From Obrimoposthia wandeli (Eukaryota), in NCBI GenBank assembly GCA_977020255.1, contig CDROCS010000162.1, positions 248,001 to 312,000 of the forward strand: a stretch of 64,000 nucleotides of DNA, read 5' to 3'. The notes beneath the pieces are model-generated. The model made no database searches. It was not told the DNA's origin and worked only from the letters and a program-made list of their open reading frames with translations. The translations under genes and the position numbers were made by a program. Shown in pieces: positions 9,085-63,168 of the stretch (position 1 is the stretch's first letter; the number at the start of each line of letters is the position of its first letter).

Positions 9085-9117
9085 TATAATTTCCGGGTTG
9101 ATATGTGTTGGTGTTGA
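9085..9117 (-). CDS. Microexon, 33 nt, xNTNTYQPGNY
   Basis: ttatttcag|TCAACACC...AATTATA|gtgagt; paralogue at 12628-12660. Confidence 0.82.
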
Positions 9118-12100
9118 CTGAAATAAAATTTATTCGATTATAAAGCATCTCCAAATTTGTCTAATAATGTTTGAACATATTTCATAAAATCGCTTGGATA
9201 TCAAGGTAAAATAAAACATTTTTAGCATTTGGATTTAAAAATATTATTCTAGAAAAAAAAAGGTTTAAAGAAATTACACTTTAAAACAGTTTCAAATTAT
9301 TAGTTATTTGACTCACATGTATTTGCTGTTTGATGTGACATGCGGTCATCTGAAATAAATTCAATAAGTTTCATAAAAAATATATGGACAATTTATTTAA
9401 AAAGCCACTTTCTTGAGCGAATTAAATATAATTAACATTTTAGCACTGATTTACAAACTATAAGATAAAATAATTTAAATAAATGTGAAATACAATTTTC
9501 TTTTCGATCAATTCATAATTTTCGGTATTTATAACAATGTTTGGAATGCGTTCTCTGATGTGGTGAAGAATTTTCTTGGGAACGGTAAAACTGACAACTA
9601 TCAAGATAGATTTCTTGATATATTTTGTTATCTGGATACTTAATTCTTACATGCCAATGTGTATGTCACAACGTTAAATGTTGTGACTGTGTATGTTTAA
9701 TTCTCGTATTGAGCCTAAAAGTTCTGTTTTTTGTCAAAATGCAAGATCTTATATCTGAAAAACCTGATGCGATAGACAAAAATCTACACCAGATTTGAAT
9801 TCTGCTCACTAACTTTCGCTAAAATCAATTGGAATACATTGTGCCAGAAAAATGTCCTAACCTGTACTATTAATGGTGATTATGGAATATCGAAATATGT
9901 GAAATGACTATTGAAACATCACTATTTAGCAATTATGGCCTTTGGTAGACTGGATAGCACATAGCATATTTTTGGATAGAAAGGTCAATTTACTTATCGT
10001 ACTTGGTGCATTCATTGACTGTTGAATTGTGCCAGGTCCTGAAATTATTTTTATAATTTTACACTATCAAAAGATATTCAATCATATAGTTACAAATGTT
10101 TTGCATTCCTAGGTGACAAGGATATAGGTGAATTTCATTAATATTTCATTAGCATTCTTCGGAGGTATGACAATTAAATCGGAAAAAAAATTATTCAAAA
10201 TAAAGAATATTATTGCAGAGTTCAAGTTCCTCTTTTATCTGATAAATCCTTACTCTATAGTTTGAAGAAAACTTTCATTTCTTTCACGTGAATATCTTCT
10301 TGTTGTCTCTTTCTTATCTTACTCAAAAAGTGTCTTTATTTAGTGAGTGAATATATCATATTTTATATGTCTCCTCTTGTGCGGTTAGTTTCTCTTTTGT
10401 TTCATACTGAGCACAGACTATTTCATTCATTCATGACAAGCCATCGAAATTACCATGGTCAATATCTTTACTATGTTCTAACTTAATATTAAATTCTGAT
10501 AAATTTGCCAGCCATGTTTGAAATTGAAGACTGATTGGGTTTTTCCATCGTTCTTAAAAACATCGATGCTTTATGAACTGTTCTTGCCAAAAATTCTTTT
10601 CCATATAATATTGTTTGAAATGCATAATAAATTCGTATACTGCTGAAAATCATTTTCTGGTAACATAGTAGCCTTTTTCATGAGAAGTCAAATGTCTTGA
10701 AACATATGCAATCACTTTTTCGTTTCTAATTTCATCCAGTTAGCTCAATACTGCCCCAATTGCACCAAAGATTGTGTCTGTATCAATTCGAAATTTTCTA
10801 TTTCGCCTGAAAAAGTTTAATATTGGAACTGTTGTTAATTTTTCTTTGACGAGTGCAAAACGTGTTTTATGATCCGTTTACCATCTTTCATAATAGTTTG
10901 TCTTTCCTATGAAGGATCTTAGTTTCCAGCCACAATATGGTTCTTTGAAATTTATAATTTCATTGACTTTCGACCGATTTGTATGTATTCCGCTTTCTGT
11001 TATGGTATGACCTAGGAATTTTAACTGTTTCTGACCAATGAAGTATTTATTAGGTTTTATTTTGAGGCCTACAGCCGAAATTCTTTTGAATAATTCCCTT
11101 AATAATTTATAATATTCTTCTTGATTGTTACTATAAACAAGGATTTCATCCAGATAAACAATTGTTTCTTTGAATGACAAACCATCCAATATTTTATATA
11201 TCACATTATGGGATGTTGGAGGTACTGTAGGCAACCCAAATGGCAATTGATTCCCAGTTTTTATACTGAAAGCAGTTTTAGTTTGAGAAATATGGTGATT
11301 ATGGAATATCGTAATATGTGAAATGACTCCATTGAAACATCACTATTTAGCAATTATGGCCTTTGGTAGACTGGATAGCACATAGCATATTTTTGGATAG
11401 AAAGGTCAATTTACTTGTCGTACTCATTGACTGTTGAATGGTGCCAGGTCCTGAAATTATTTTTAATAAATAATTTTTTATAATTTAACACTATCAAAAG
11501 ATATTCAATTAAACGACATTTACAAATAATAATGCGAAACTATGCACTATTGGGGTTTCGTGGAATAGTTTTGTTAAGTTCATATCGGCGTTAGAAACAA
11601 TAAAATATTATTTTGATTTTAACCAAAGCCAGTCGATCCATACAGCGACTGGAGTAGGCGGATGGCCATATGAGGTGAACATGGAGCTGTGTAAGATAAT
11701 GCATCATGATGAATTTTTTTCGAATGAGTTTTAAATCTGTAGATAATTAAAAATGGTTAATGCCATAGTTAAAGTGAAAGGGGAAAATAAGCATTGAATA
11801 TTGGGCAGTTTTCTTTCAATATTTATTGTTGTCGGACAACCTTACGAAAATTATAGAAACATCAAATACTCTACTAAATAATAAAAGTTCGGCCACATAT
11901 TATTAAATGCAAAATAACCAATAAATGTAACAATACGAAGTAGTAATTATAATATTAGCAATATGTACAATTTTGATAAACGTGATATGCACAAATTATT
12001 TCTTAAAACTTGCAATATTATCAATTAAAATGTTTTAACGTTTTAAATCAATATATTAAATCAATATTAAATTATCAAGTAATGCCTAAATGTTTATTAT

Positions 12101-15100
12101 TGAAGACAATAATTTGATGTCAGATGATGACAAGTGTATGAATTTATATACATGTTCAAATTGAGTTAGATAATTTTTATTGTAAATATCAACTTGTATA
12201 GTGATGCATTTCAGCTACCAATTCAACAATTGAAGTGGAGTGGGATAACTTTTGTGACATTTGGGAACATATTTAGAAATATTTGACGACTATAAGTGGA
12301 AAAAGTCTATTATAGTCGACATTCATGAGCCAAAGTATTTTAATAAAAAACATCACAGATGCTCTGTGAAAGAAACAAATTGAATTTAATTTTTGATGAT
12401 GCAGTTTAAAATTTTCATCCAAAATTTTAATGAATTTTTAAAACATATTACGTTTGATATATTTAATTGAAAATAAAAAATAAAAATAAAACGTCTACTA
12501 TAATTTAAAAGTAGGACATTTCATTTAATTTCTTTTTTATTATGTTCAGATAATAATCACAGTAAAATTTCTCTTGGAAAGATTACCGATTTACTAAAGT
12601 ATTTTTTTGTTTGTTTTTAACACTCACTGGAATTTCCGGTTTTATATGTGTTGGTGTTGTCTGGAATAAAAATGGTTCGATTAAAAAAAATTTCCAAAAT
12701 TGTAAAATTATGCTTTAACATATTTTCATAAAATCACTTCGAAATCAAGGTAAAATTAGGACATTTCTAGAATTTGGAATGGTAAATATTATTCTAATAT
12801 AAAATAAAATAAACTTTTTTTTTATTGAATCTGCTAATGTTTTTCCAAATGAATAGTTTTTTGACTCACATGTATTTGCGGTTTGAAACGTCATGCGATC
12901 ACCTGAAATAAATTCGAAATAATTCTTATATAAATACAGTTAATTAATGCAAAATGTTATTTTTACATGGGAATTAAATAATCATTAAAATTTTAACACT
13001 GGTATACAAACTAAGAGTGAAAATTATTGATATAAATGGGTCATTTAAATTTTCTTTTCGATCAACTCATTATTTTTTATGTATTTAAATATGGTTTAAT
13101 AAAAGTTTTTCACTAGGTGAGATTACAGATAACAGCTAAATAGACAAGTTACGAAATGTTTTTAAAAGTTTTTATATAGCAAGTAAAACCCAGCCGTTTA
13201 AATGCGATTGTACGTCAATTTAAGCTTAAGATGTCCACTAGGCCGGGTCGAAATTTTATATTTGAATTACACATTATGCCTTGAGTTCCCTTTGGGTTCC
13301 TGAACAACATACTAAAATTACATTGCCATGCGACCCACCCTACCCCTCGCATACGACCCCATCATTTTTGTTAAATCTATGGAAAAAATCCATATATTCA
13401 GACAATTAAACTAGATGAGATATGTAGGTCATAAACTTTATTTTTAATGTTATTATGTGTTTTTAAGGTACTTTATGAATTATAGAATAAAGATTATGTA
13501 AATTATAGAAAACTAGTTCATTCTTCATATGAGCAATGTGTAGAAATTCTATTTTTAAAGAATAATTATAATATACTTAACAAATATTTAATGGTGGTAT
13601 AAAATAAATAAAAGATGCTTTTTAGAAAATGAACATATATTTATATACATAATACGTCGTATTACATTGACCACTGACTTTTCCACTCAAATATAGGCAG
13701 TTTCTTCCTAGAATCAATGACATTTAAAATATATGTTTGCCTGTTAGCGTAGCCAATTCTAACCGCTGATGCTCTTGTAACTAAATTAACTGCATGTTCT
13801 ACTACTTGGCTATGACAGGGGATATTAATAAGTTGTAGGGGTTCTTTTCGTATGATTAAAAGCTCGTCGTTTGTCAAATGTCTTAAAATAGGGGGCGTTG
13901 TGATGTTTTCTTTATCCCAGTCAATCATATCAACATAGTCATTTGCCTTTAGATTCAATGTTTTGGGAAGCTAAAAATTCCTTTCAATTTTACCTGTAGT
14001 TCTTGCGCGAATTATCCACTAGAGTTTCTCAAAATTGGATTAATTAGTCTGCATTTCATTTCATTTAATAATGATTTATAAAATATAAGAATAGTTGAAG
14101 GGGCTTTAGTGCAGACCACTGTAGCAATTACTACGGTGGAATAGAACATTGAAACACATTATTTTAGGATAGTAAGATCATTGTAAACAATTAACATTAC
14201 GTACTCGGTGTATTCGTTGACTGCTCATTGTTGTCGGCTCCTGAAATAATTGTAACAAACTCCTTATAAAAATAATTTTACATTATCAAAAGATATTCAA
14301 CTGAATCAATGTTGCTGTTTATGAGGTGAAACATTTTTATATTTCTTATTAATTATGTACTCTGGTAACTAAGGTTGATTGACTTAATAATAATAGTTGG
14401 ATTAATCTATTATATACATGTTGATAGACAAATAATTTACCCACCATCAAATAGCAAAAGAATGGAATGTTAATAATGATCACACATCAGTGGAGTGGGA
14501 AAACTTCTTGGCGTATGTAAACAACACATTTAGGAAACTTGGACTGGAACGGGTGGAATGATCACACCTGATGAATCAAAGAATATTTCTCTAAAATATT
14601 GCTAATGCTTATGTAGTAAAGCAGATTTGACTTTAGGTTGAGTGGATTTAAATAACCATCTTATGAAAATCGACATATGATATCTTTAATTTAAAATCAC
14701 AGATTAAAACTTCTAAAATAATTTATAAGTAGAACGTTTCATTTCAATTATTTATTATTTTATTATGGTAAAATTTAAGTTTCTTAAAAATATTGTTTTG
14801 ACCGCAGAAAACATGTCAATTAGACCTTAAAGTGAAAGAGTACCAAATTATTAGCTATTTAATTTTGTTTATTTGTTAAACTCTCTATATTTTCTAAATT
14901 GAAATGTATTGGTAATATCTGAAAAAATAATTTTAGTCAAACATGTCTAAAATTTTATTAACATTATTAAAATATCAATTTATACGACTACTTTTCATTT
15001 AGACCCAATTTTACAAATGGGAAGAGAATTTGTGATGTTAAGCTCGGAACGACACCTTACTTTATAATATGATTATGATGACTGATACTAATGATCTATT

Positions 15101-17442: not shown

Positions 17443-17478
<36 letters not shown>

Positions 17479-20400
17479 TGCTTTGTGATTTTAATTTAAA
17501 ATAGTTCGTTTTTCTGTGAGACACCTTATATATATACACACATTATATACATTAAATTAAAATATTTAACGGTTTTTCGATAATAGCTCTCTCCAAACAT
17601 CGAACTTTTCTAGTTGCCGCTTTTTAATATTAAACAAATATACAATAAAGTTTTCGTACCCACTGTATTCATTGATTGCTGCGTTTTACCAGTTCCTGAA
17701 ATGATCGTAGAAATCTTAATTTTCATAATTGTAATATATCTAAAGAATTTCAACTAAATGACTTCTTCGGTCGATGAAGTGGAAATACGTACAATTAAAA
17801 ATAGTTGAAATCATGGTGCCAAGTTAAAATTTATAAAACATTAATGTTTAAACTTCAATATAATTTTTTCAACTTCACATGCGTATTGTGAATATAAAAT
17901 AAATTTGAGGAAAAAACTGTTCCATTGTTTTATGTGAATCTAAATGGGCTTGTCGGCTGCTGTATTTGAACTTTCACTTTACAGTGCTACAGTTAGAACC
18001 AACTAAAATATTTTGTTATACATGTCAACATTTCAAAATATTGCTTATGTATAATTTACTACTTTCATTTATAAGTAGTATATTTAAAAATAACCTTAGA
18101 TAATTAATTAAATTTTTGTATAAATTACAAAGCAATCACAAAGCAATCACAAAACTCAAGAGAAGGACGGAATCAGAAAAATCTCAGACAAACAACAAGC
18201 AAACCCAATACAGACAGTCAATTGTTCCAAATTAAACCCTAAATAATCATCATTAAAGCCAATGTGACACGTAATTAACCCATTCTATACCACTGTCCTA
18301 TTTTAGGACAGTAACTTTGTGTGATTCCTATACCCAAAGTATTTAATTAAAAATATTATTGTTTGTTTTAACTAATCAACGAATGTTTATTTAATATTTT
18401 GGGACATTTAAATAGTTGTAAATGTAAATAATTGATACCTACTAAACACTAAAAAGTAAGAAATTAACTACATTTATTAGTATGATTTTCATCCTCATTG
18501 TAGAAATGTACAAAATAGTAATAAAAAAAATCCGCAAATTAAAATGTTGAAATAGATAGGTAATAATACTGGATACATTAAAAACCCAAAGTAAAACATT
18601 CAAAGTACTAATCTAGACTTATTTGGTAGTGTCCTTTTATATGACGCTGGTACTTTGAGGCTAATTATTAAAAGTAATGTTTCTTCTTCAAAAATGCACT
18701 TTCAATGCATAATATATTAGTATACAGTGGATTAATTGTTTTTTATAATAGAGTTTGACTATTCAGAATGCTATTATTTTTAATTTTTGATACATATTTA
18801 TTTATTTTACTGTGGGGAAATGCAAATGCAAATCAACTACGGTGTCAGAGACAAAAATTACAATTGCAAACCCAAAACATATTGTGTGAAATGCAAAAAA
18901 ACACTTTGTAAATTTTGTTTTCCCAAATACCATGATCAACTCTAACAATTTCTAGTTCTATTATTGCACATGACACATAATTTATCATGTATGTGTACTG
19001 TACATGTATGCTAAACTTGAAGTGCTCCACCAAAATTAGACATTACTTAAGAAAAATGCAAGCCGAAGTGGTGGGAAACAGAAGCAGAATGAAAGTGTGT
19101 TTGTGAAAGAATTAGACAATCTTTTTGATATAGCCCATGCAGATGCACTAAAATTAATCACAAATCAAGAAGAATGAGAGTTTCTCACAGCCCAACGAAA
19201 AAAGGGGCGTCGTGGTTGCATGGGATCGGTGGACAAGGTGCTATCGTTGAAAGAGTCACGTGCAGTAGAAAGACAACAATCTCAGATGGGGAGACAAGAG
19301 CGTGAAAAGAAGCAGATGGCATATCTAACTGAAACTGTTAATAGTTTTAATGGGGAGGGCAAAGAAAGCAGTAGCGATGAATCTGATCGTACTGTTGAAC
19401 ACGAAGATACGATGAAATCTCCTCCAAGAAAGAGGGCAAGACAAGCTATAATGACACCACAGCTTGAAGCATCACTGGATAGAAATAAAATAAGTGACAG
19501 ACAAGCAACATTTGTTCTGGCTGCCACAGCTCAGAGTCTTGGACATGATATAGGAGATTTAAACATAAACCGTTCATCAATTCGAAGAAGTCGGCATCGT
19601 ATTCGATCATAACTTGCCATCTCTATTACATGCAAGCGTGCCATGGTGAAAGCGATGAAGGAGAAGGATGGAGTACGTGTACCTCCAGCAAGAATTCGAC
19701 TGGACCTTGATAAAGCTGTTGACATAACTATCAGTGATTTTGTTACAAAGAATACCATGAATTTCTTTACCAAGCTTCAAATCGATACATCATTTCTCGA
19801 CCTGGCAATCTCGTCCAGATTATTGTTCTGGTCTGCAGGTAGTGAACCAGTTATGCGTGGTCAATGACAATGCAGAGAGGAGTCGCTCTCATGGAACAGT
19901 TTAACGATAAAATTACTACCGATGAACAACAAAAACAATTTCTGCTACAAGTCGTTCAGGATAACCGAAATCGTGTGCCTTTCTGCAAGAAATCGTTGCT
20001 GCTCTAACTTTTCATACTTCAAGTTAACTATTCTGGATAACAAATTGTAGGACTGTAGTGTAGGTGTATTAGCATTACAAAATATTATAAACTATTATGA
20101 ACAATTGAACACTTTGATATAAACTTTTATGAACACTTTGCATTTTGAACACTAGTAATTTTCATGTTTTTTCCTTAAACGAGTATAATGTATAAATTTT
20201 GGATCGCTTGAGCTACCCCTAAATATTAAGTAAAGTTAATTTTGGATGTTGCTTTTCAATGTAAATAGAAACCATATAAGAGGGTGAGACACTTAAAAAT
20301 CGAAATTTTTGTTGTTGTAAAATTGTTAAGGACCACCCTAATGTACAGTACCTATTATGCATTTGTAATTAGACAATGTTTTAAACTTATACATGTATAA

Positions 20401-47400: not shown

Positions 47401-50400
47401 TTTTCCCCATGTCTCCTCAAATATCTGGACGGGTTCCTGCAAAATATTAATAAAATTTAAACATATAAATAATTTACCTCAATGACGTGCAGGTTCACCA
47501 ACTTGGCTTTCTTCCGATGGACCGTGTGGGTTTTGACCCGATGGCGTTGCGGTTTCTTAACCGCCGCTTGCTTCCTATCCACCGGTTGAATAGGCGTCGC
47601 TTCTTCGAGAATGTTTTCCATCTATGTGAATTATTAAATTTAATATCTAAACAATTTACCTTAAAATTATCTGGAAACGCTAGGTATCGGAGCTCACTCC
47701 TTGGCAGCTCATGGCTACATTGACTCGCCAAGTACTGTGGTTCTATGAGCCTCTCCGCCATGGTCACTGACGGTGCCAAATCCAGTTGAAGTTTCTGAAA
47801 ATTAAATTAAAAATCATTTAAAATAAATTATGTCTAACCTCATTAGTCGCTTTTATTCTCCTAACAGGAGATTTTGGCCTTTTGAATGGTTCAGGCGTTG
47901 TATTATCCGCATTCGGAGTAGCAGAGAGAGTGAGACCATCCCAATCGTCGATGAACAGGTGCCACTCGTCCTCGTCCAATTCTGCCACCATCGAATCGTT
48001 GGCTCCTGGGGCTCCGATACTTGGCTGTATCCATTCGTCGATGAATGGAGTCAAGTCCTCCCATCCGACGGAGGGCGTTGGGCGGTGGGCGGTAGGCGGG
48101 AAAAACTAGGATATAGTCCGCATCCCAAGGCGCGAGCGTTGGTGGTTTGCCTTGATAGGGGCGAAAAATGTTTTTGGGGTACCCCCCTATCCTTTAAAAC
48201 CGTGCATGTGTGTGGAGTGAAATTTCACTCCACACACATGCACGGTTTTAAAGGACAGTGGGGAGAGGGGGTGTGGATTAGACCGGACACATCCACCTAC
48301 TATTAATAAATTGTATAAAAACACAAATCATATTAAACACATTTATTTAAAATATAAAATCAATTTTTTTTTCATATTTTCTTTCGTTAATGATCGTCTT
48401 TTATTAGATAGAATGTTCGGATGAGTTGAAAATGACATCTTCACTTCCACAGAAATAATGAGAGCACTTTGGAGGGCAGCTAATTCTTTTAAATGATATA
48501 ATTCTATATTGAGATCTACAAGCTTTTGAAGTCTATGATTTTTGTTTAGAACATCTTCAAGTTTTTCTAACACATCTAACTCAAACTTTATTTTCATTTC
48601 ATTATAGCGCTCAAAAAAATAGTTGGAGTAACATCCCCTCTGTCACGCAGTGTTATTAAATCTACAAGTGGAATGTACTTCGTCTTTATAGTTAATAATT
48701 CTTTCTTGTTTGCATTATTACTAAGAACATCTTGGATCTCAGCAATACTTGAAACTTTCATTACTTGATATTTCATTACAAATGAAGAAATAGCTTCTAG
48801 ATGTTCAACATAATATGACACGGCTTCTAACCACTTTCCCTATCGAGTGGCACAATGTTCAGGCGAAAGTGATATTCCTTCTTGTTGTAATTTTTGACAA
48901 CTACACTTACAACTTATAATATATAACATATAAAATGTTTTATAATTGAACCCTATTGTTTCAAAATATTTCCGTTTCAGAAGACAATATTTGTGGTAGA
49001 TGGACCTCGTTATAGCCATGGTTAAACTCGAATCACACGTGGCAGAGATTTGATGGAGGTTTTGGGTAAATCCGAAGACACAGATCAAATGACAATTCCT
49101 GTAAGCCCCACTTAATCCACTGAGGGAGCCCGCTTGAATATTCCAAGTGAGACAAGGATGTTAATTTATTTATCTATAAAGGTTATATAAAATTGAAGAA
49201 TGCAACTGAAACATCTGAAAATAAAACTTTCACAACAGTTTGACATATCTGCATTGAACTGTAAACGGTTGTAATTCGAATGAATCTAAAATGATCATTT
49301 TAAACTCACATATGAAAGAGGGTATCAATGATGATTGCGGCTGTTCGACTAAAATATTGAAAATATAATACAACATCAAATATGCAAACTTGGTAAAAGA
49401 TTTAACAAATTCATTTTATTTTTTAATCTCTTATAATTAAATTTTGCTTGAACATAAGTGAACATAAGGCATTGATTTAAAAGACAATTCTTTCTCATAC
49501 AGACACTAATTCCCTTTCTTTCAGTTATGCAATTTTTTACAAAACCTTTTCTATCCCATCATCCCGTAGACCAGATTTCATCAAAAATATTTTAAGTAGT
49601 CACTAAACTTATGATATTGGAATTATGACAAAACATCCAATAAGATGTATATTTTTGTGTATTTACAATGATATTCGTAAAAGCTATTTCGCTTATTGTC
49701 GAAGTTTAAAAATACACCACACTTCTCACACTAAGCTTGCCACAGTTTCGAAACGTTTTCCAGAACTCAGTCAATATCATAGTTCTTTATCTACAAGAAA
49801 AGGCCAATTTGCAGTTTGACCCAAACTTACCACATTTGGTTAAATTGTTGACACTCACTACGCTTTCCCTATCTGATTTCTGCACCAAATGGTTCCATAC
49901 ATATTGCAACATCAAATTGAAACTGTTACAACACGACAATATTGTTTGCAAATCATCCAATCAATTAGAAGCCTAGTTTAATACAAAGAAGAATGTGTGA
50001 TGATACCACCCCTGGTTTTGATGCGTACGTAGACGTCCATTATAATGGCATTGAGGTCGACAACACCCTTTATTTTGTTGTTCAAATTCAAAATATGATA
50101 ACATTGTATTTGGAATTTGCTTCTTTATTACACGTTGTTGCACTGAGAATTCACACCCCATTGAAGGCCATAAATAAATTTATTTAAATGCAGTATAAAT
50201 TCTTGTGTGTATTTTTTTAAAAAATTCATTACTGTATTTAAAACAATTTAGTAAATTAATTAAACCATTTGCTCTTCAAACATAAATGTATTTATATTTG
50301 AAATGTAAATATGTATTGTTTAAATTATTTTATCGAAATATTTACAGATATTTACTGCATAAATACAAACAATTTGTTATGTTATCATAAATCTAATACT

Positions 50401-53400
50401 TGCATTCAAATATTATTTAAATTTTGAATGTAAAATCATGCTAATTTGTATTCTTAAAATGCCTTTTTTAAATAAATACAACTATTTTCTTTGCATTTGA
50501 GTGTGAATACATACTAATATGTACTGTTTAATGCATTTTATCGAAGTATTTGAGAGTAAAAATGTACTGTTTTAAGAAATTTATTTTGAAATTTGAGTGT
50601 AATTACATTGCTCAAAGGAATTTATTACAGTATTTGCAGTTGATTAAAGGAGTTTATTATAAGAAGTGCTTGTAATTATTTGCTAATTAAATACAATTAT
50701 TTGTTTGTAATTATAGAATTTTTTTACTTACCATTTAAATGTATTTCAATGTAACAACATACTAAAATGCATTCTTTACGAGAATTAATGGCAACTATTT
50801 ACTAAATAATTACAATTATATTTATTAAATTTATTGAAGTAATGACAGCTATTTACTTAATAAATGCTTCTATTTGCTATGTTGTCATAAAAGTGTTTGA
50901 AATTTGAATGTAAAAACATGTTAATATTAATTTTAAAAAGCTTTTATTGAAGCAATTTACTAAATAAATAATTCTTTTTTGAGTTTAAAAACAAACTTAT
51001 AGGCTCTGTTTAAATAAAAAAAAAACATTTTGCAAATGTAATAATAAATTTATTTAAATGTAGTAGAAAATTATGTGTAAATACAATGCATAAACTGTGA
51101 TAACATATATTTGTCTCGAATTAAATGATTTTTTTGAAGTAATTGTGATTTTTTATTAAAGTAAAATCAAAGTGAAAAGAAGCTGTTTAATTTTGAACTA
51201 TATGTTCTTGAAGTATTTGAGTATTTGCGTATTTCCAATAGAAAATAAAAAATAATCTACTTACAAATAAAGTACATAAATTAAAAAAAAACTAAGTCAA
51301 ATTCATTTTGTACACTTTTTAAAGATAAACGTCATTATATGTGTGTACACATACACACTCGTTTGTATTAAAATATCTACATACGATAATTTATTGAATT
51401 AATTAGAAGTGATAAGCATGTACTAGAATATGAATAGTTTAACGAATAATAATTGGTCTTGACGTAGCATTTAGACGATACACTTTAAATTTTACAATAA
51501 ACAATTATGACTTCAAAAATGACTCCAATATAACAATTTGAAGAATTACAAAAGCTCTTGAAGCCACAACAGTTTCAATGATATGAAATGAAGTACTTTG
51601 ATGTCTACATGATTTCAGAAGTAATTTTTGAGATAATAAATATTCCATTTAGGTGATTTTTAACACCTTAACTCACACGACGTTATAGCTCCATCAATTT
51701 ATATAGAGGTAATATCTTTGAAATAAACTTTAGTTGCGTACAAATGTTTTTAATTAGTTCAGGAAAACAAATAACGTAGATTTAATAGCTATGTTATTGA
51801 TAAATTTAAATAAACATTTATTCATGTTATTTTTTCAATAAAAAAATACAACAAACACGAAACAATTCTTGCACCAAAAGAATTCTCAAATAAATAACAT
51901 TAAAAAAATTCAAAAAAATATGGAAAAATATCGAGAACAATATTTCAATTTAATAACATAATTAATATTCGGTTTCTCCCTGGGTAGAAGTCTAAAATTG
52001 AGTTTCTCACGAGCATGTCTGCAGGTAACTTCACTCCAGAACCATTTCCCTCTCAAATCGACAGAAACAAGTCAAATTCCAGCGCAAAGTCCGAGACTTG
52101 CCGGATTTGTACATTGCTCCTGAATTAAGCCTGTGTTTGGCAGACATCAAAGGAGGGGGTATGAAGTGAAATTCTAGACTTGACCCATTACACTTCTCAT
52201 TAGATTTCTGGACCTACATCTCTTTATGCTGCTGGTGCAGCATTAAATCGGAATTGTATTCTTCCGTGTCGAGTTTATCATCCTTTGCTGACCAATTCAT
52301 TAACCATACCGCTTATGTTTAAGCATTCATTGCCACATTCTGCACGAATCTCATCAAATTTTCTGACGTTGTCGTCAGATTTTAAGGTTAGTATAGCGTC
52401 ATTGAAATCTAGATTGAAACTGAGAGCTGCTTTGGCAGAAAAAGATAAGTAAGAGTAAAAATAAATTACACAAAAAACCGCGCTATGCTTCTGTAAAGAG
52501 ATATTTCCCACTTATTTTTGTAGATATTGACATATTTCCTACTTAATTTTGTAGATAAAGACATATTTTCACTTACTTTTGTAGATATTGGCATATTTCC
52601 CACTTACTTTTGTAGATATTGACATATTTCACACTTATTTTTGTAGATATTGACATATTTCTCGCTTATTTTCGTAAATAAAGACAAATTTCCCACTTAT
52701 TTTTGTAGATATAGACATATTTTTCACTTATTGCATAATTATTATAAGAAAAAACTAAGAAAACTAAATTAAAAGAACTCTTGTATGAATCGAAACCTCA
52801 ATCAATATCCTGCATTAAATCAAAAAGTTTTTAAAAAATCTGTTTAAATATCATAATGACAATTTGGTTTATTTTTGACCATTATATATAAAATCTGTAA
52901 CCTTGACAAACCAAAAGAGAAACAGACACTTTTGAATGATTTAAATAAAATAAACTGTCTTTGTATTTTAGTAAGTAAACGACAAATTATAAAAAAACAA
53001 GAAATTTATAAAATTAAAAAGTTTCTGCCTATGTAGCTTACAGTTTGCAATGAAATGTTTATATATTTTTATTTATTCTTTGATGTTTGAAAACCGCGTT
53101 AACGAAATAAAACTCACTTAATCCAGTCTCAATCATTGTTGGTCGCTCACCTAAAAAACATGTAAATAAATTCTTCAACACATTTCGAAGTCCTTGAAAA
53201 TGTTTAAATAAGACACACAATATCAAAAAAATTATAAAAATGCAATTTCTATAATAAATTCGAAATAAAATATTTAAAAAGTTTAGGACAGTAAATTTAA
53301 ATGTACATAAATTTAAGTTTTAGATTTAAACGTTTTAAAGAATTACATATTTTTCTGTCAAGGATCAAGATAATGTTTGAATCAAACTCAAAAACACAAA

Positions 53401-56400
53401 TTCATCTACGAGATATAAAACTGTCTTACATATGTCAGAGGGCTTTGGAGGCGGCGGAGGCAGCTCACCTGAAAGATACGAAGAAGTCACTTTGATCAAT
53501 TTTTTAACTAAAACGATGAACTAATAAATTTAATGTTATTTAGTAAACTATAAAAAGAGATTAACAATGATATAACAAAAAATATAAATAAACTTCAAAA
53601 TTAGAATAGTAAATTTACGAAACTTAAATTATTCTAGATTGATAAGCAGAGTGAGCAAAGGAAATCTCACATAAATCCGATTGATTCATTGTTGGTCTTT
53701 CGTCTGTAAACAAAATAAATAAATTATTTCATAAAGGATTTGAAAACTTTGAAAACATTTTGAAACTATTCTAAATTAAAAGGTGTTAAATATACCAAAA
53801 CTTATTTTTGTAAATTTATTTTTAATTACATTTCAGCTTAAGGAACCCCTGCTTTTGTCTACAGAACCCTAGGGTTCCGTGGAACCCACTTTGAGAACCC
53901 CTGCTGTATAGAAACGTATTTTTTAATACAATTCCTTAATAAAAGTTGAAACTCAAACAAAAAAGCTTTCTTTGTCTTTATTTGGAGTGGTAATGCTAAA
54001 CCGTTAATAAAATCACGTAAATCTTATAAAAATGTGTACTTCTGAATCATGCCTCATCCCATACATAAATGTAGGAGCGTATCAAAGTATTTTGCAGTTA
54101 CTACAGATTGATAGTTTTGAGTGTCTAAGTGCTTATAAAACTATCTACATAAAATTTAACGAATATTACAACTTGTATAAGTGAAGTCTCTTACAAATTT
54201 GTAAAATGAATAGAAAACCGAGTTAGTTTGAGAATTTTTGGCGAAATTAAAATATTTCTGTTTTAGACGACGTTTCCTCTGTTCATTCTTAAACACCTGA
54301 AGCGCATGAGTTACTGGAAAGTGTTCTTAAATATAATCTTGATCAGAAATAAATAGTTGTGCTAGATGGACCCCGTTATGACCTTGGTTAAACTGGAATG
54401 ACACGAGCTTGGGATTTGAAGGAGATTAGACGGGGGCTTCTGAGTGAATGATATAACACAGAGATCAAATGAAAATTCCGGTATGACCCACTAAATCCCC
54501 GGGTAGAGCTCACCTGAAACTTCCCAGTGGGATGAGGTTGTTAGTTTATTTATCTCTTGGGCTACATGCAATACAAAAATACAGCTGAAACATCAGAAAA
54601 TGGAACTTTCACAACAGTTTGTCAACTCAACATCGAAGTGTAAATTGTAGAAATTCTAATGAAACCACAAATATCATTATCAACTCACATGTGACAGAGG
54701 GTTTCAATGATGATTGAGGTCGTTCGCCTAAATATAAAAATATCATACAGCATGAGATGTGCCAGCTTGGTAAAAAGTTGAAATACCCTTAACAGTAAAT
54801 TTTATTTATATTGCTCAGGGAAAATCATCGATACGAAAGATACGAAGAAGTCACTTTGAACGAGTTTATAATTAATAAGATGAACTAATAAATTTATATT
54901 ATTCAGTAAATTATAAAAAGAGATTAACAATAAAATAACAAAAATATAAATGAGCTTCAAACTTAGACTAAGAAATTGACAAAAATGAATTATTCCTGAT
55001 TGATAAGCAGAGTGAGCAAAGAAAATCTCACATAAATCCGATTGATTCATTGTTGGTCTTTCGTCTGAAAACAAAATAAATAAATTATTTCACAAGGGAT
55101 TTGAAAACTTTGAAAATATTTTGAAACTGTTCTAAATAAAATGTGTTAAATAGGCCAAATCTTAACAGCATCGAAAATTATTTGACAGATGTTTAAATAT
55201 GGTGAGAAACATTAAATATATTATTAATCCTGATATTTTGTTTAAAGTTACAAAAATGTCTTGATTAGACAGTTATGAATGTTAACAAAATAAATTATTC
55301 CAAAAAATATTTTATTCATGCATTCTACAGCTGTTAAACAACTCGTTTTAAAATTATCGACATGTTTAACTTATTCGAATTAGGTGGTAAAAAATAAAAT
55401 TCCCATTTTCACACAAATCTCTCAGTTTAGCTCGGTGACCCGGAGCATAATCTAAGATTAACAAAATTTTAAATTCAAGATTTTTTGAGTGGCTGTATTT
55501 TTTTACTTAGCCAAAGAAACGGTTTGTAAACCAACATTATAATTGTTTTTAACTGCATTTGCAGCATTTCTCTTTGAATTCTTTTTAGAAATGGGATTTC
55601 TAAAAATTAATAAATTTAAACAGACAATTTTTTTTTAATTAAAATATTCTTATACTTATAAAATATATTTTTAACTAAATATAAACCGCAATAAATCGAA
55701 ATTGGCATAATAGGATAATCATGTACATTAAAAAGCCACCAAATCATACGATTTATGAATCCCATGAACATTTCAAAAGTCAAAAATAAATATTTAATTG
55801 AAATTTAACATATATTATTGATCAGTTCAAAAATATTTTTGGAATATTAGTTTTCTGATTATGTATATGAAGGAAATTCTTTTAAGATTGAAGCTTGACT
55901 CAGTTCGTTTTTTATAGATGACTTTGGTTATTAGATTTATCCTCATTTATATGCATAAATATGTAATATTTCTATACGGTTTAATGGATGCTATTTAGAT
56001 GATAATGAAAAAAAATACAACCTCTTTGGCCTTTGATTAAAGCTAATATGTTTTATATTTAATATTTGTTTTGATTTAATAAATGTATTGCAATTCATTT
56101 TTGTCATGTTATGATATTTCTCAAAAAACTTTAAAAGTCTAACGTACATATGTTTGTCATTCACCGCACTTAACATACATAAGAGATATAGTAATGTATT
56201 TATACAAATTTATCATCTAAAAGTTTGTTTTATAAGTCGATTCCTATACTGACGAGCTATTTCAATTCCTGTGGGTTCTAGGGTCATGTATATGTTTTTA
56301 GGTACTTAGGTCCATCCTTGGACATAGGATGTGAAATTCATACACATATGCACGAAATTTCACTCCATACACATGTACAGTTTAAAGGAACAAAGCATAC

Positions 56401-58114
56401 CTACCACCAAGGATGGATTAGACTGAACAAAATCACATACATATATTTTAAATCAAAATCTTTTACAAGTATAATTAGGTCAAAATTATTTATATTATTG
56501 AATTTATCGAAAAAATATCCATTAAGTCAATTTGATCTGGAATTTAGTGGCTAAATGTGGGTTGACCTCAATCTTTCACTATCCCATATTATTAATACAT
56601 GTTGTGAAAACGAAAAAAAATCTCATCGGTTTTTCGTGTTGGGTTTTTGTTCTATTTTGGTCATCGTGCCATTTCCTGAGCCACTTAAGAATCTTTTCCA
56701 CAAATTTCGTATTATTAATACAGTATTATAACATCAGTATCTTATTATTTCAGCTGGATATAAACTACCTAACATTGTCTACATGGTCGATATACTGGTC
56801 AGTCTGCAAAGTTGCAAAAAATCAAAATTATGTAATTCTGCTAAATATTCTTCGCTTGTCATTAAAATCAACTCGATATGAAGAGTTACTTTTTCCAGTT
56901 TTGAAGAAAATACATCCCAGTTCCTATTAAACTGTATGAATGAAATTATTGTAAGAGTTTTTCATCGGCATGAGAATAGGCCACATCGTAATAGCATTGA
57001 AATTATTTGTCAGATCATTGAATATCCTTTAAAAACAATAAAACGTTTTGAAGAATTACATATTTTATGTCAGTAACCAAAATAATGTTTGGATTAAACT
57101 CAAAAACACAAATTCATCTACGAGATATAAAACTGTCTTACTTATGTTAGAGGGCTTTGGAAGCGGCGGAGGACGCTCACCTGAAAGATACAAATAATTC
57201 ACTTTGATCGAGTTTATAACTAAAACGATGAATTAATAAATTCATATTATATTATTTAATAAATTATAAAAAGAGATTAACAATAAAATAACAAAAATAT
57301 AAATGAGCTTCAAACTTAGACTAAGAAATTGACAAAAATGAATTATTCCTGATTGATAAGCAGAGTGAGCAAAAGAAATCTCACATAAATCCGATTGATT
57401 CATTGTTGGTCTTTCGTCTGAAATCAAAATAAATAAATTCTTTAAAAAAGGATTTGTCAACTTTGAAAACATTTTGTAAACATTATGAAACTGTTCTAAG
57501 AAAACGTTTGTTAAATAGGCCAAATCTTAATAGCATTGAAACTTTTAGACAGATGTTTAAATATGGTGAGAAACATTAAATATATTATTAATCCTGATAT
57601 TTTGTGTAAAGTTAAAAAATGTCTTGATTAGACAGTTATGAATGTTAACAAAATAAATTATCCCTCTGTTCATTCTTAAACACCTGAAGCGCATGAGTTA
57701 CTGGAAAGTGTTCTTAAATATCATATTGATGGGAAATAAATAGTTGTGCTAGATGGACCTCGTTATGACCTTGGTTAAACTGGAATGACACGAGCTGGGG
57801 ATTTGATGGAGATTAGACGGGGGCTTCTGAGTGAATGATATAACACAGAGATCAAATGAAAATTCCGGTATGACCCACTAAATCCCCGGGTAGAGCTCAC
57901 CTGAAACTTCCCAGTGGGATGAGGTTGTTAGTTTATTTATCTCTTGGGCTACATGCAATACAAAAATACAGCTGAAACATCAGAAAATGGAACTTTCACA
58001 ACAGTTTGTCAACTCAACATCGAAGTGTAAATTGTAGAAATTCTAATGAAACCACAAATATCATTATCAACTCACATGTGACAGAGGGTTTCAATGATGA
58101 TTGAGGTCGTTCGC
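9085..58114 (-). CDS. Partial multi-microexon gene: 27 symmetric phase-1 exons, 957 nt, low-complexity P/Q- then S/T/N/Q-rich modular protein
   Basis: Each exon has a pyrimidine-rich YAG acceptor and a GTRAG/GTACG/GTCAG-type donor, length 27-39 nt divisible by 3, and an open frame in phase 1. No stop at any sequential junction. Paralogous exons keep length and splice sites while their flanks diverge. Start and stop exons not located. Confidence 0.82.
9317..9349 (-). CDS. Microexon, 33 nt, xDRMSHQTANT
   Basis: ttatttcag|ATGACCGC...AATACAT|gtgagt; paralogue at 12870-12902. Confidence 0.82.
9651..9686 (-). CDS. Microexon, 36 nt, xTTFNVVTYTLA
   Basis: atacacag|TCACAACA...TTGGCAT|gtaaga; no paralogue seen. 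Confidence 0.55.
10003..10038 (-). CDS. Microexon, 36 nt, xPGTIQQSMNAP
   Basis: aatttcag|GACCTGGC...GCACCAA|gtacga; paralogues at 11424, 14205 and 17660. Confidence 0.82.
10420..11280 (-). mobile_element. Gypsy pol fragment (RT and RNase H), degenerate
   Basis: PFGL...VYLDEILVYS...LKFLGHTI...LRSFIG in ORF 10878-11246; downstream RNase H-like FSAVYEFIMHFKQY and DGLS. Confidence 0.85.
11424..11450 (-). CDS. Microexon, 27 nt, xPGTIQQSM (9-nt in-frame deletion variant of 10003-10038)
   Basis: aatttcag|GACCTGGC...TCAATGA|gtacga, inside a ~210-bp direct repeat (11292-11509 vs 9873-10082). Confidence 0.75.
   Translation of the reverse strand, partial: DLAPFNSQ
12628..12660 (-). CDS. Microexon, 33 nt, xNTNTYKTGNS
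   Basis: ttattccag|ACAACACC...AATTCCA|gtgagt. Confidence 0.82.
12870..12902 (-). CDS. Microexon, 33 nt, xDRMTFQTANT
   Basis: ttatttcag|GTGATCGC...AATACAT|gtgagt. Confidence 0.82.
13239..14020 (-). mobile_element. hAT-superfamily (hATm-like) DNA transposon 3' remnant
   Basis: Terminus TAGGCCGGGTCG at 13239; ORF 13662-13958 carries PCHSQVVEHAVNLVTRAS...SRKKLPIF, resembling the hATm transposase C-terminal motif PCHTQAVERxVKLVTEAS (subfamily from recall). Confidence 0.65.
14205..14240 (-). CDS. Microexon, 36 nt, xADNNEQSTNTP
   Basis: ttatttcag|GAGCCGAC...ACACCGA|gtacgt; diverged paralogue of 10003-10038. Confidence 0.8.
14886..14918 (-). pseudogene. Dead microexon, 33 nt, xITNTFQFRKY, donor GT>GA
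   Basis: tttttcag|ATATTACC...AAATATA|gagagt; positional and peptide paralogue of 9085 and 12628. Confidence 0.6.
17097..17530 (+). mobile_element. Tc1/mariner transposase 3' fragment
   Basis: WPPRSPDLNLMDFYFRGYLKYEVY motif; TIR-like GAGACACCTTATA near 17520. Confidence 0.75.
17660..17695 (-). CDS. Microexon, 36 nt, xTGKTQQSMNTV
   Basis: catttcag|GAACTGGT...ACAGTGG|gtacga; most diverged member of the QQSMN family. Confidence 0.8.
18279..20674 (+). mobile_element. Internally deleted piggyBac element
   Basis: TTAA on both sides (18275-78, 20675-78). TIRs CCCATTCTATACCA / TGGTATTTAATGGG. Subterminal GTCCTATWWTAGGAC palindromes. C-terminal Cys-rich domain RCQ...CKPKTYCVKCKKTLCKFCFPKYH (~18835-18935). 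Confidence 0.8.
19030..20340 (+). mobile_element. hAT-superfamily (hATm-like) remnant nested in the piggyBac
   Basis: QRKKGRRGCMGSVD, LDRNKISDRQATFVLAATAQSLGHD, NDNAER...EQQKQFLLQVVQDNR; terminus GGACCACCCTA at 20340; left end not found. Confidence 0.7.
21250..22400 (-). mobile_element. Possible Penelope-like (GIY-YIG) remnant
   Basis: Weak: RYVGHAERERL at ~21640-21680 resembles the GIY-YIG YVG motif; coding-like but heavily broken. Confidence 0.3.
23615..23653 (-). CDS. Microexon, 39 nt, xNEFQSMNSINTA
   Basis: ttttttaaccag|GGAACGAA...ACAGCAA|gtaagt; shares QSMN with the 36-nt family. Confidence 0.78.
23955..24720 (+). mobile_element. Highly decayed Tc1/mariner element
   Basis: TAAGGTGTGTTCAG terminus-like sequence at ~23957; YDLNPFDSFY*GFMKS at ~24490-24540 resembles SPDLNPLDFFLWGYLKS. 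Confidence 0.45.
25141..25173 (-). CDS. Microexon, 33 nt, xNSRVQKGLNS
   Basis: caatttcag|ACAATAGC...AACTCAA|gtacgt. Confidence 0.72.
27967..27993 (-). CDS. Microexon, 27 nt, xCFSLISNS
   Basis: ttaattttcag|CGTGTTTT...AACTCAA|gtaagt; same AACTCAA end as 25141. Confidence 0.65.
29938..29970 (-). CDS. Microexon, 33 nt, xPQQSRRSTRN
   Basis: ttatttgtag|CACCCCAA...CGAAATA|gtgagt. Confidence 0.72.
31106..31144 (-). CDS. Microexon, 39 nt, xQRLEDDFQSRFI
   Basis: gacctttatag|ATCAAAGA...TTCATTG|gtaaga. Confidence 0.68.
34617..34655 (-). CDS. Microexon, 39 nt, xEQPQQTPKPCET
   Basis: atcattcag|GTGAGCAA...GAAACAA|gtcagt. Confidence 0.8.
34780..36011 (-). mobile_element. Cluster of LTR-like fragments / possible solo LTR
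   Basis: Minus-strand starts TGTCACGGGG (36011), TGTTAAGGCCC (~35005) and TGTCACGGAG (~34880); no TSD or internal domain confirmed. Confidence 0.3.
37798..37836 (-). CDS. Microexon, 39 nt, xELPEAPPKPSET
   Basis: ttttttcag|GTGAGCTA...GAAACAT|gtaagt. Confidence 0.84.
38020..38593 (+). mobile_element. mariner transposase C-terminal remnant with 3' TIR
   Basis: Decayed KKVMITVW, NDNAKSH, HPSYSPDLDPSDFHIF motifs; ends AACAACCTAATA, typical of a mariner TIR. Confidence 0.8.
41030..41068 (-). CDS. Microexon, 39 nt, xEQPQAPPKPSKI
   Basis: tttttatag|GTGAGCAA...AAAATAT|gtgagt. Confidence 0.84.
42754..42786 (-). pseudogene. Dead microexon, 33 nt, xERPTMNQTEL, donor lost
   Basis: ttatttcag|CTGAACGT...GAATTAT|gatagt; peptide paralogue of ERPTMNQSDL exons. 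Confidence 0.65.
43363..43401 (-). CDS. Microexon, 39 nt, xEPLPPPAKPSDI
   Basis: atctttcag|GTGAGCCT...GACATAT|gtgaga. Confidence 0.84.
45023..46682 (-). pseudogene. polB: Protein-primed family B DNA polymerase, N-terminally truncated and frameshifted
   Basis: DIYLLADVFE, GIHGGM, YIDINNLYGWAL, YKLKSNSIFGK, GDTDS, GKFKDE, FLRPKCYS, AKGV across ORFs 45930-46682, 45163-45888 and 45023-45211. Confidence 0.9.
47305..48054 (-). CDS. Spliced Polinton gene of unknown function (4 exons, 208 aa; may originally have been longer)
   Basis: Exons 48054-47839 (72 codons), 47794-47660 (45), 47621-47478 (48), 47436-47305 (43 + stop), joined by AT-rich GT-AG phase-0 introns of 44, 38 and 41 nt. Confidence 0.7.
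48190..48255. repeat. Perfect 66-bp palindrome in right subterminal region of Polinton
   Basis: TCCTTTAAAACCGTGCATGTGTGTGGAGTGAAA followed directly by its exact reverse complement. Confidence 0.95.
48340..48900 (-). mobile_element. hAT transposase C-terminal remnant
   Basis: LSPEHCATR*GKWLEAVSYY and ALIISVEVKMSFSTHPNILSNKRRSLT resemble hAT TRWGTW and dimerisation-domain motifs. Confidence 0.7.
49310..49348 (-). CDS. Microexon, 39 nt, xEQPQSSLIPSFI
   Basis: atattttag|TCGAACAG...TTCATAT|gtgagt; diverged paralogue of 54689 and 58076. Confidence 0.8.
51980..52420 (-). mobile_element. Possible PIF1/Helitron helicase fragment
   Basis: Weak: FLSI*EGNGSGVKLPADML...FYP resembles the Helitron LLxIGxG...LP...YP region; next to a 31-bp tandem array. 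Confidence 0.25.
52499..52730. repeat. 31-bp minisatellite, about 7.5 copies
   Basis: Consensus GACATATTTCCCACTTATTTTTGTAGATATT. Confidence 0.92.
53118..53150 (-). CDS. Microexon, 33 nt, xERPTMIETGL
   Basis: ttttttag|GTGAGCGA...GGATTAA|gtgagt. Confidence 0.82.
53430..53468 (-). CDS. Microexon, 39 nt, xELPPPPPKPSDI
   Basis: atctttcag|GTGAGCTG...GACATAT|gtaaga. Confidence 0.85.
53671..53703 (-). CDS. Microexon, 33 nt, xERPTMNQSDL
   Basis: ttgtttacag|ACGAAAGA...GATTTAT|gtgaga. Confidence 0.84.
54276..54831 (+). repeat. 556-bp near-identical segmental duplicate of 57663-58218
   Basis: Same length and only a few substitutions by eye; contains one microexon; diverged third copy at ~48990-49420. 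Confidence 0.92.
54689..54727 (-). CDS. Microexon, 39 nt, xERPQSSLKPSVT
   Basis: tatatttag|GCGAACGA...GTCACAT|gtgagt. Confidence 0.82.
55032..55064 (-). CDS. Microexon, 33 nt, xERPTMNQSDL
   Basis: ttgttttcag|ACGAAAGA...GATTTAT|gtgaga. Confidence 0.82.
56320..56430. mobile_element. Orphan diverged fragment of the Polinton terminal repeat
   Basis: GAAATTTCACTCCATACACATGTACAGTTTAAAGGA...GGATTAGAC matches 48219-48285. Confidence 0.6.
57142..57180 (-). CDS. Microexon, 39 nt, xERPPPLPKPSNI
   Basis: atctttcag|GTGAGCGT...AACATAA|gtaaga. Confidence 0.85.
   Translation of the reverse strand: MSVLRRFQSPLT
57385..57417 (-). CDS. Microexon, 33 nt, xERPTMNQSDL
   Basis: ttgatttcag|ACGAAAGA...GATTTAT|gtgaga. 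Confidence 0.82.
58076..58114 (-). CDS. Microexon, 39 nt, xERPQSSLKPSVT
   Basis: tatatttag|GCGAACGA...GTCACAT|gtgagt; identical to 54689-54727. Confidence 0.82.
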
Positions 58115-60991: not shown

Positions 60992-61059
60992 TTAACATTG
61001 TTTAATTTTGTTTATACATAACTTTTCGGATATGTAGTGTTAAACTAGTTTTGCGTTAT

Positions 61060-62103
61060 GAGCAAAGTTTATCGATATTCCACTATCATACGAATATTTA
61101 CTTCAATATTGGAAATATATGTTGATATTACAGGAAGATACATTGGTTTAATGATTGTAATATTTGCGATATCACCATATTTTTTGTTTTTATCTAACCA
61201 AATTGATTTTAACAATGGTATTTTTACACCACCAACATATATAGACTCTATCAAATTGGTATCAAACTCACATATTAATTGAGGAATACCTTTACCATAA
61301 CCCGTAAATTCTGTTTTATTAAGAACCAGTACAAATGCCATACGATTATTAAACATTATACTTGAAATATTTGATTTTAACTTGAACTTAATGAATTTAT
61401 ATTTTTCAATATAAAACATGCTAAAAATATGATTACATTTAGATATAACGTATTTAATTAATGCATTCAAATCTGTACTATTGAAATCGTTGTCAAACAC
61501 GATTTTTGAATTGATATTTTTCTCTCCTAATTGATAATATTCGAATTTTGTTGATACATATTTATGATACATGGTTTTTTGCGCAGTTAAAATACCATTA
61601 TCATCTGATGCTAAGTAATTTTCATGGTTTAATTGATTATTTAGGAAACCCAATTGATTTTTCGATTTTTTCAATAGTTTTATATACAATATATGTTTAT
61701 TTAAAGATTTTATAACAAGTACATTTTCCATTTTGTCTTCACCATATGTACTATACTCACATTAAAGATTAGCAATGTGTTTTGAGGATTTTATTTCTAC
61801 TTTTGAAATTTTCTTTATAATAAATTTAACAGGTTTATGCTTATCATTATGAATTTCCTTATCTTTAAATTCAACATTTAATGAGACAGTATCGGTTTTC
61901 TTAGCACAAACCGTTTCCTTATACTTTATTTCACTACCCGTGTGTAAAATAACGGGTGTATTACTATAAGTAAATTATGTCAATGCAACTTCCCATTCAC
62001 CTTGAAGTTCTATCGGATTTTCCCAATCAACAATAAATTTCAATGCGGTATTATCAGGTTGAATGTTTGGACAACTATTAGATGGTAACACAATATAGAA
62101 CAT
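61060..62103 (-). pseudogene. Minor capsid protein (penton-like)
   Basis: Starts MFYIVLPSNS...DNT...PIELQGEWEVALT*; ends CEFDTNLIESIYVGGVKIPLLK...PMYLPV...IEVNIR; one internal stop seen. Confidence 0.8.
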
Positions 62104-62109
62104 TTTTAC

Positions 62110-63163: not shown

Positions 63164-63168
63164 ATACT

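Follow-up and report, generated by a model that had tools for sequence, protein, structure and literature searches.

In tropoelastin and in the PEVK region of titin, both vertebrate genes, runs of short exons that share one phase and a length divisible by three (3n) have arisen by exon duplication, and the repetitive, disordered modules that they encode are subject to cassette splicing. PEVK exons are about 75-90 nt long and specify mainly proline, glutamate, valine and lysine. Elastin exons range from 27 to 186 nt and specify glycine, valine, alanine and proline, with Lys-Ala or Lys-Pro (KA/KP) cross-link exons.

Schistosome micro-exon genes (MEGs) contain very small symmetric exons set among long introns, and are hard to annotate automatically (PMC4350168, PMC10526429). 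Their products, of at most 189 aa, are assembled from 10-20 exons, mostly of 15 bp (PMC10526429), and MEGs have been reported as restricted to platyhelminths (PMC4350168, PMC10526429). Genes consisting almost wholly of exons below 40 nt are difficult for predictors and aligners alike; most of the good documentation comes from schistosomes, in which such genes have been connected with secreted, variable proteins. In the RS-exons of recursive splicing, the rebuilt 5' splice site and the exon's own donor compete, and this competition sets inclusion (PMC6224609, PMC8605326).

The locus analyzed here is best described as a variant of genes built from symmetric cassette microexons, with a series of exons beginning GTGAG as its most unusual feature. 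As in a tropoelastin-type cassette gene, all of its exons are 3n, and codons are split in the same way at every border. However, the alternation of hydrophobic (G/V/P/A) and Lys-Ala/Lys-Pro cross-linking exons that marks tropoelastin is absent. Unlike in titin PEVK, proline, glutamate, valine and lysine do not form the majority of residues, valine is rare, and there is no Pfam PPAK match at E <= 1. The exons are also smaller than those of PEVK or elastin, and a part rich in threonine, asparagine, glutamine and serine comes after the proline-rich part.

The resemblance to schistosome MEGs is one of architecture. Very small 3n exons, separated by far longer, transposon-carrying introns, hold most of the visible coding sequence; in-frame skipping is possible by design; the product is proline-rich and of low complexity; and the array has expanded by recent duplication. 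The exons are nevertheless 27-39 nt long where those of MEGs are mostly 15 bp, they number at least 27 and encode at least 318 aa, and the array is strongly repetitive internally, being made of A-B-C cassettes. No sequence relation to schistosome MEGs was found with pieces of 63 and 67 aa, a comparison limited by query length, or with Pfam. The original prediction had proposed a system analogous to MEGs; the symmetric tiny exons and long introns bear it out, and the product size, the exon number and the lack of a sequence relation do not. Because exon size and number, product length and repetitiveness all differ, and because no signal peptide was found in the window and no sequence relation was seen, the locus is not classed here as a MEG. 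If it is expressed, it would be a second, independent example of micro-exon design.

The reading that we favor, with a probability of roughly 0.7 as judged from the DNA sequence alone, is a genuine protein-coding array of at least 27 phase-1 microexons that has grown by duplication and whose gene ends lie outside the window, that is, the whole 64,000-base stretch under study. The array would comprise at least 27 minus-strand exons, phase 1 at both borders, together with a 28th copy with a dead donor, all set among transposon-carrying introns. The exons would encode modules of 9-13 residues in a low-complexity, probably disordered protein. In the proline-rich half, a cysteine or tyrosine codon would be split at most junctions, with C-E-x-P-x4-K-P-S-x-I alternating with Y-E-R-P-T-M-N-Q-S-D-L. 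Tandem duplication of the A-B-C cassettes, still ongoing, would account for growth, and selection would retain the peptide, the 3n length and the splice sites.

Layout of the microexon array

The window contains 0 N and has a GC content of 29.5%. A tRNA scan and an Rfam search over the 64 kb gave no match to either, and the only recognizable proteins are transposon fragments. All 27 minus-strand segments of the original prediction, described as AG/GT-bounded, in phase 1 and of 27, 33, 36 or 39 nt, were found where it had placed them when the peptides were located by minus-strand translation. A full exon extends 2 nt upstream and 1 nt downstream of its peptide coordinates. In all 27 exons, a pyrimidine-rich tract ending in AG comes before and a GT after, and all are 3n and phase 1-1, with lengths of 27, 33, 36 or 39 nt. 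The predicted stop-free joined frame also held, although its length was recomputed as 957 nt, or 318 codons, in place of 319. The count of at least 27 microexons stands overall, but one of these (9686-9651) is doubtful, and a further copy (42786-42754) had been overlooked. The exons, with the evidence for each, are as follows; in the text they are cited by an end coordinate.

58076-58114, minus strand: A-type exon, 39 nt, ERPQSSLKPSVT; identical to 54727 and 32/39 to 49348, AG/GT in register; donor at the 99.7th percentile
57385-57417, minus strand: B-type exon, 33 nt, ERPTMNQSDL; identical copies at 55064 and 53703; acceptor at the 99.5th percentile
57142-57180, minus strand: C-type exon, 39 nt, ERPPPLPKPSNI, GTGAG start; rebuilt 5' splice site score 8.2
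55032-55064, minus strand: B-type exon, 33 nt, ERPTMNQSDL, recent duplicate; duplicated-block comparison
54689-54727, minus strand: A-type exon, 39 nt, recent duplicate of 58114; lies in the 556-nt block 54276-54831, 98.6% identical to 57663-58218
53671-53703, minus strand: B-type exon, 33 nt, ERPTMNQSDL; splice sites and duplication
53430-53468, minus strand: C-type exon, 39 nt, ELPPPPPKPSDI, GTGAG start; as a query at >=25/39, matches only five other C-type exons
53118-53150, minus strand: B'-type exon, 33 nt, ERPTMIETGL, GTGAG start; pS 0.60-0.69 and pN 0.13-0.19 against other B exons
49310-49348, minus strand: A'-type exon, 39 nt, EQPQSSLIPSFI; exon 32/39, flanks about 75% identical to A-exon flanks
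43363-43401, minus strand: C-type exon, 39 nt, EPLPPPAKPSDI, GTGAG start; C-family conservation and splice sites
42754-42786, minus strand: extra B-type exon, 33 nt, ERPTMNQTEL; good acceptor, GA donor; pS 0.86 and pN 0.12 against 57417
41030-41068, minus strand: C-type exon, 39 nt, EQPQAPPKPSKI, GTGAG start, old copy; 27-32/39 to other C-type exons, flanks at background
37798-37836, minus strand: C-type exon, 39 nt, ELPEAPPKPSET, GTGAG start, old copy; C-family conservation and pS/pN
34617-34655, minus strand: C-type exon, 39 nt, EQPQQTPKPCET, GTGAG start, old copy; 23-26/39 to other C-type exons, in register where the all-exon scan lists it, weak acceptor (55th percentile)
31106-31144, minus strand: probable singleton exon, 39 nt, QRLEDDFQSRFI; splice sites at the 94th/98th percentiles, no paralogue
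29938-29970, minus strand: probable singleton exon, 33 nt, PQQSRRSTRN; weaker acceptor (79th/99.8th percentiles), no paralogue
27967-27993, minus strand: probable singleton exon, 27 nt, CFSLISNS; splice sites at the 96th/99.6th percentiles
25141-25173, minus strand: probable singleton exon, 33 nt, NSRVQKGLNS; splice sites at the 95th/96th percentiles
23615-23653, minus strand: microexon, 39 nt, NEFQSMNSINTA; QSMN..NT motif in common with F-type exons, at the peptide level only
17660-17695, minus strand: F-type exon, 36 nt, TGKTQQSMNTV; 23-24/36 to 14240 and 10038, AG/GT in register
14205-14240, minus strand: F-type exon, 36 nt, ADNNEQSTNTP; family match, single-copy depth
12870-12902, minus strand: D-type exon, 33 nt, DRMTFQTANT; 26/33 to 9349, single-copy depth of about 50
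12628-12660, minus strand: E-type exon, 33 nt, NTNTYKTGNS; 28/33 to 9117
11424-11450, minus strand: F-type exon, 27 nt, PGTIQQSM; in-frame 9-nt indel against 10038, same gtacga donor
10003-10038, minus strand: F-type exon, 36 nt, PGTIQQSMNAP; family match, gtacga donor
9651-9686, minus strand: doubtful microexon, 36 nt, TTFNVVTYTLA; acceptor at the 56th percentile, no paralogue; frame kept with or without it
9317-9349, minus strand: D-type exon, 33 nt, DRMSHQTANT; family match to 12902
9085-9117, minus strand: E-type exon, 33 nt, NTNTYQPGNY, the last exon seen; family match to 12660

The exons make up 1.95% of the 49-kb span and have a GC content of 42.6%, against 28.9% for the span. The transposon-carrying introns between them run from 199 to 5919 nt (0.2-5.9 kb). 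Three families occupy the first half: A (E-R/Q-P-Q-S-S-L-K/I-P-S..), B (E-R-P-T-M-N-Q-S-D-L) and C (E-x-P-x4-K-P-S-x-I/T). Their order there is A B C B A B C B' A' C (B, dead donor) C C C. After these come five singletons, and then the F, D and E families in the Thr/Asn/Gln-rich half. The codon split at the junctions is mostly Cys (T|GT) or Tyr (T|AC). By composition, the proline-rich half is 23% proline, 11% glutamate, 11% serine, 8% glutamine and 6% lysine, with rare valine and regularly occurring cysteine. The other half is rich in threonine (19%), asparagine (15%), glutamine and serine.

Exon 11450 could also be read as 36 nt long. This reading was rejected in favor of 27 nt because the gtacga donor of the shorter form is homologous to that of 10038. 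Motif and identity scans for further exons added 42786 alone; other candidates (22146, 48057, 14918, 57900/54513 and 20414) have either no splice sites or no open frame.

Splice signals

A strand control was carried out with generic criteria that were untrained on the exons, namely a YAG preceded by at least 13 pyrimidines in 20 positions and a donor of the form GTRAG, GTAYG or GTCAG. At the four exon lengths, the minus strand has 22 segments that satisfy these criteria and the plus strand has 1.

The splice sites were also scored with position weight matrices built from intron bases only, in a leave-family-out scheme, and ranked against all AG and GT dinucleotides on the control strand. Acceptors have their median at the 95.8th percentile and donors at the 99.3rd, the matrices having been trained on these very exons, a circularity that the leave-family-out scheme lessens without removing. 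Both sites reach at least the 90th percentile in 23 of the 27 exons. A polypyrimidine-YAG acceptor and a strong GT donor had been described for every exon; the acceptors of 9686 (56th percentile) and 34655 (55th) are poor. In the case of 34655, conservation supports the exon even so. With thresholds fixed, 7 short AG..GT pairs occur on the control strand, one of them 3n, and the minus strand yields 25 known exons, all 3n, plus 9 other pairs, of which 2 are 3n.

The four linking exons (31144 to 25141) are placed solely by splice signals and open frame, and it is here that a division of the array has to be weighed. It may be that there are two tandem genes, a proline-rich one at 58114-34617 and a Thr/Asn-rich one at about 23653-9085, and that the four singletons between them are chance AG..GT pairs. 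The composition does change sharply between the halves, and the linking exons, which lack paralogues, have lower splice scores. However, from the control strand only about 0.2 chance 3n segments open in phase 1 would be expected in the intervening 11 kb, where 4 are observed. Both halves also share strand and phase 1, and neither a terminal exon nor an ATG-containing first exon was found between them. Two genes appear quite unlikely, and a single array is tentatively preferred.

Conservation and selection

Similarity among the exons is confined to the exons themselves. The 39-nt exon 53468, used as a query at a threshold of 25/39 against 128 kb of both strands, matches only five other C-type exons, all in exact register with AG and GT; exon 41068 gives the same outcome. 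Identity scans with all exons likewise show exon-limited matches in each of the families A-F. The exons at 34617, 37798 and 41030 had been said to keep their length, splice sites and motif with no similarity in the flanks, and this is what is observed: identity with each other and with the remaining C-type exons is 25-32/39 in register, and the flanking 100 nt of these old copies (41068, 37836 and 34655) stand at a background identity of about 30-40%. The exons have thus been kept while the introns were randomized.

The substitutions between copies also fit a coding role. In a Nei-Gojobori comparison of seven independent paralogue pairs, pooled, the proposed frame gives pS 0.36 and pN 0.17 (dN/dS about 0.39), and the two wrong frames give pS/pN of 0.18/0.23 and 0.25/0.20. 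The synonymous excess is therefore seen in the proposed frame only, in a small data set of about 230 sites. In the C-type exons, synonymous variants occur at the conserved lysine (AAG/AAA) and proline (CCC/CCA/CCT).

Copy number was assessed by depth in sequencing runs of one sample, which behave as genomic DNA: 24-67% of the words of mostly intronic sequence are present, and the reads show no exon-exon joints. Between 9.0 and 14.3 kb the exons stand at about 50x, compared with 10^3-10^5 in intronic repeats, so the exons checked, being at single-copy depth, are not part of a dispersed repeat. The intronic blocks 10062-11300 and 13071-14132, with word depths of 10^3 to 10^5, are very high-copy repeats.

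The earlier view that the array reflects selection and not repeat debris is upheld by the exon-limited conservation, the synonymous excess in the proposed frame and the strand-specific splice sites, and the exons are very probably real coding sequence under purifying selection. Internal paralogues suffice, from sequence alone, to recognize such an array and to show selection at the protein level. A very improbable alternative is that the exons are a non-functional relic, duplicated pseudo-exons of a dead gene or repeat that are no longer expressed. One exon does have a GA donor, the recent duplications are messy, and the 63- and 67-aa pieces found no homologue. Against this, all 27 frames are intact, the synonymous excess is restricted to the correct frame, the old copies retain their exact length and both splice sites amid randomized introns, and the exons are at single-copy depth.

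Duplication history

The copies differ in age. The duplicates grade from 98.6% identity over 556 nt, through 85-90% and about 74-75% including flanks, to similarity in the exon only. The near-identical pair is 54276-54831 and 57663-58218. The recent duplications are messy and permuted. The overall pattern is what would be expected as the trace of repeated tandem duplication of exon cassettes combined with selection on the peptide.

The exon overlooked earlier, 42786-42754, lies 577 nt downstream of 43401, a C-type exon, at a point where one of B type would be expected. Its differences from the other B exons are mainly at synonymous positions (pS 0.6-0.86, pN 0.12-0.13), but its donor has GA in place of GT, with stops directly after. 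It is probably a recently disabled cassette, although the GA may instead be a polymorphism or a rare non-canonical donor. A conserved exon that lacks a GT donor suggests that some cassettes may be dying.

Variation in the array may also be visible in contigs of the DNA runs. In some, 10060 is joined directly to 11488, so that the 1427 nt with exon 11450 and a high-copy repeat are missing; these contigs have a depth of about 165, compared with about 50 for contigs identical to the window. Contigs that diverge by 1-4% over 9608-11770 likewise have about threefold depth. These variants could stem from a second haplotype, from pooling of the sample or from paralogous copies, and would mean that a cassette exon varies in copy number.

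Frame logic and exon skipping

As all exons are phase 1-1, skipping keeps the frame, and nearly any subset can be joined in frame. There are exceptions: 42 of the 351 possible exon-to-exon joins create a TGA, where exons ending in T are joined to the four F-type exons starting with GA. No such join occurs inside the proline-rich half. The claim that symmetric exons permit in-frame skipping holds for almost every skipped product, and for all of those inside the proline-rich half.

It could be that the locus is a MEG-like diversity generator, in which many combinations of microexon skipping would give a pool of slightly different isoforms of a secreted or surface protein. The symmetry of all exons in one phase, with no stop-creating skip inside the proline-rich half, would allow this; tiny exons amid long introns are the very description of MEGs (PMC4350168, PMC10526429); and the exons that begin with GTGAG would offer a ready skipping mechanism. 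However, the window holds no signal-peptide exon, database similarity was absent for the 63- and 67-aa pieces, 42 of 351 joins create TGA, and MEG proteins, with no more than 189 aa encoded by 10-20 exons of mostly 15 bp (PMC10526429), are much smaller and show less internal repetition. We consider such a generator unlikely.

Exons beginning with GTGAG

At seven exons (57180, 53468, 53150, 43401, 41068, 37836 and 34655) the acceptor directly abuts a donor consensus, as YAG|GTGAG. Sites of the form YAG|GTRAG total 11 on the minus strand, compared with 3 on the plus. When the seven exons are ligated to the exon upstream, the rebuilt 5' splice site scores 7.2-9.1 with the donor matrix, by score alone, compared with 5.6-14.4 for the real donors of the array and 10.2-12.4 for the seven exons' own donors. 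Both sequence features of RS-exons are thus present: an acceptor that directly abuts a donor consensus, and an upstream junction that rebuilds a 5' splice site by score. To our knowledge, no arrangement of seven tandem coding RS-type exons in one gene has been described.

The juxtaposition of acceptor and donor in these seven exons is like that of RS-exons and Drosophila ratchet points (PMC6224609, PMC8605326). Unlike in RS-exons, however, the motif here also codes for Cys-Glu and has been inherited by all members of one exon family. Since GTGAG encodes Cys-Glu and is shared by descent, it may be an incidental by-product of coding. In the seven exons that start with GT, the glutamate codon is always GAG, giving GTGAG; in the A- and B-type exons with GC, TC, AC or CT at the start, also seven in number, it is always GAA. 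This split fits selection for a donor-like motif, although the families are related and the observations are not independent.

The GTGAG exons could plausibly serve as a handle for removal by recursive splicing. In its most developed form, this would make the locus a micro-exon gene outside the schistosome MEGs in which recursive splicing decides the inclusion of each 13-residue Cys-Pro module; a ligated GTGAG exon may then be either kept or removed along with the next intron. As a whole this proposal is speculative and decidedly improbable. If it were true, recursive splicing would act as a built-in generator of isoform combinations that expands as cassettes duplicate. The locus in any case contains a ready-made tandem series of coding exons at which a 5' splice site is rebuilt, suited to testing recursive splicing as an isoform switch.

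Gene ends and the encoded protein

No convincing ATG-initiated first exon of phase 1 with a hydrophobic leader was found in the 64-kb window. Nor was there a convincing terminal exon, including downstream of 9117, and no stop or polyadenylation context was found. The gene probably reaches past both ends of the window. Searches with a 63-aa proline-rich piece and a 67-aa Thr/Asn-rich piece, which reached proteins of about 35-117 aa only, returned no homologues, and Pfam at E <= 1 assigned neither piece to a family.

With neither gene end in the window, the array may form a constitutively spliced, disordered linker within a much larger conventional gene, with an elastic or spacer role like that of the titin PEVK exons or the tropoelastin cassette exons, the symmetry being a footprint of exon duplication. 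Tandem exon duplication necessarily yields a common phase and 3n length, and the low-complexity composition would suit a linker. On the other hand, conventional exons and domains were not found on the minus strand of the window, the composition resembles that of neither PEVK nor elastin, with no match to Pfam PPAK or any other family, and the regular cysteine suggests an extracellular, cross-linked protein. A linker of this kind is possible but somewhat doubtful.

Exon modules of phase 1-1 are typical of extracellular proteins, which favors a secreted or matrix protein, and the regular occurrence of a cysteine in each unit suggests an extracellular, cross-linked protein over a cytoplasmic spring. 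From composition and exon phase, the favored product is a secreted or matrix protein that is cross-linkable, possibly O-glycosylated, and structural or adhesive in function. It may alternatively be a cytoplasmic PxxP-rich scaffold. For the gene and its product, we infer expression, a disordered structure and a structural or adhesive role, probably extracellular, together with any skipping that is regulated.

Transposons and repeats around the array

The intron between exons 49348 and 43401 contains a 4.7-kb insertion (43634-48307) bounded by 90-nt inverted repeats (43634-43723 and 48307-48219, 93% identical). Within it, two minus-strand ORFs at 45163-46682 match Polinton-type family-B DNA polymerase, and the stretch from 46.7 to 48.3 kb is a GC-rich block (51-56%). 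A Polinton/Maverick-like remnant is present upstream of the array at 61049-63495 on the minus strand. It includes an integrase-core ORF (62325-62819) and a 230-aa ORF (61072-61761) whose nearest protein clusters include penton and minor-capsid-like proteins of Preplasmiviricota.

At the other end of the window, positions 1-4300 form an A/C-rich stretch on the plus strand, with a GC skew of about -0.4, a GC content of 37-38% and a 51-nt tandem repeat at 1233-1374. Owing to a scarcity of stop codons, several frames of this stretch are open simultaneously, and it may be a satellite or a transposon. The intron after exon 53150 holds a 31-nt tandem repeat (92-nt higher-order; 7.5 copies) at 52494-52732. 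Finally, a repeat of a few hundred nucleotides is common to 1-178, 4490-4870 and 11626-12200, at 83-91% identity and about 3-4 times single-copy depth; these sites lie in the intron after exon 12660 and at two positions downstream of the last exon seen.
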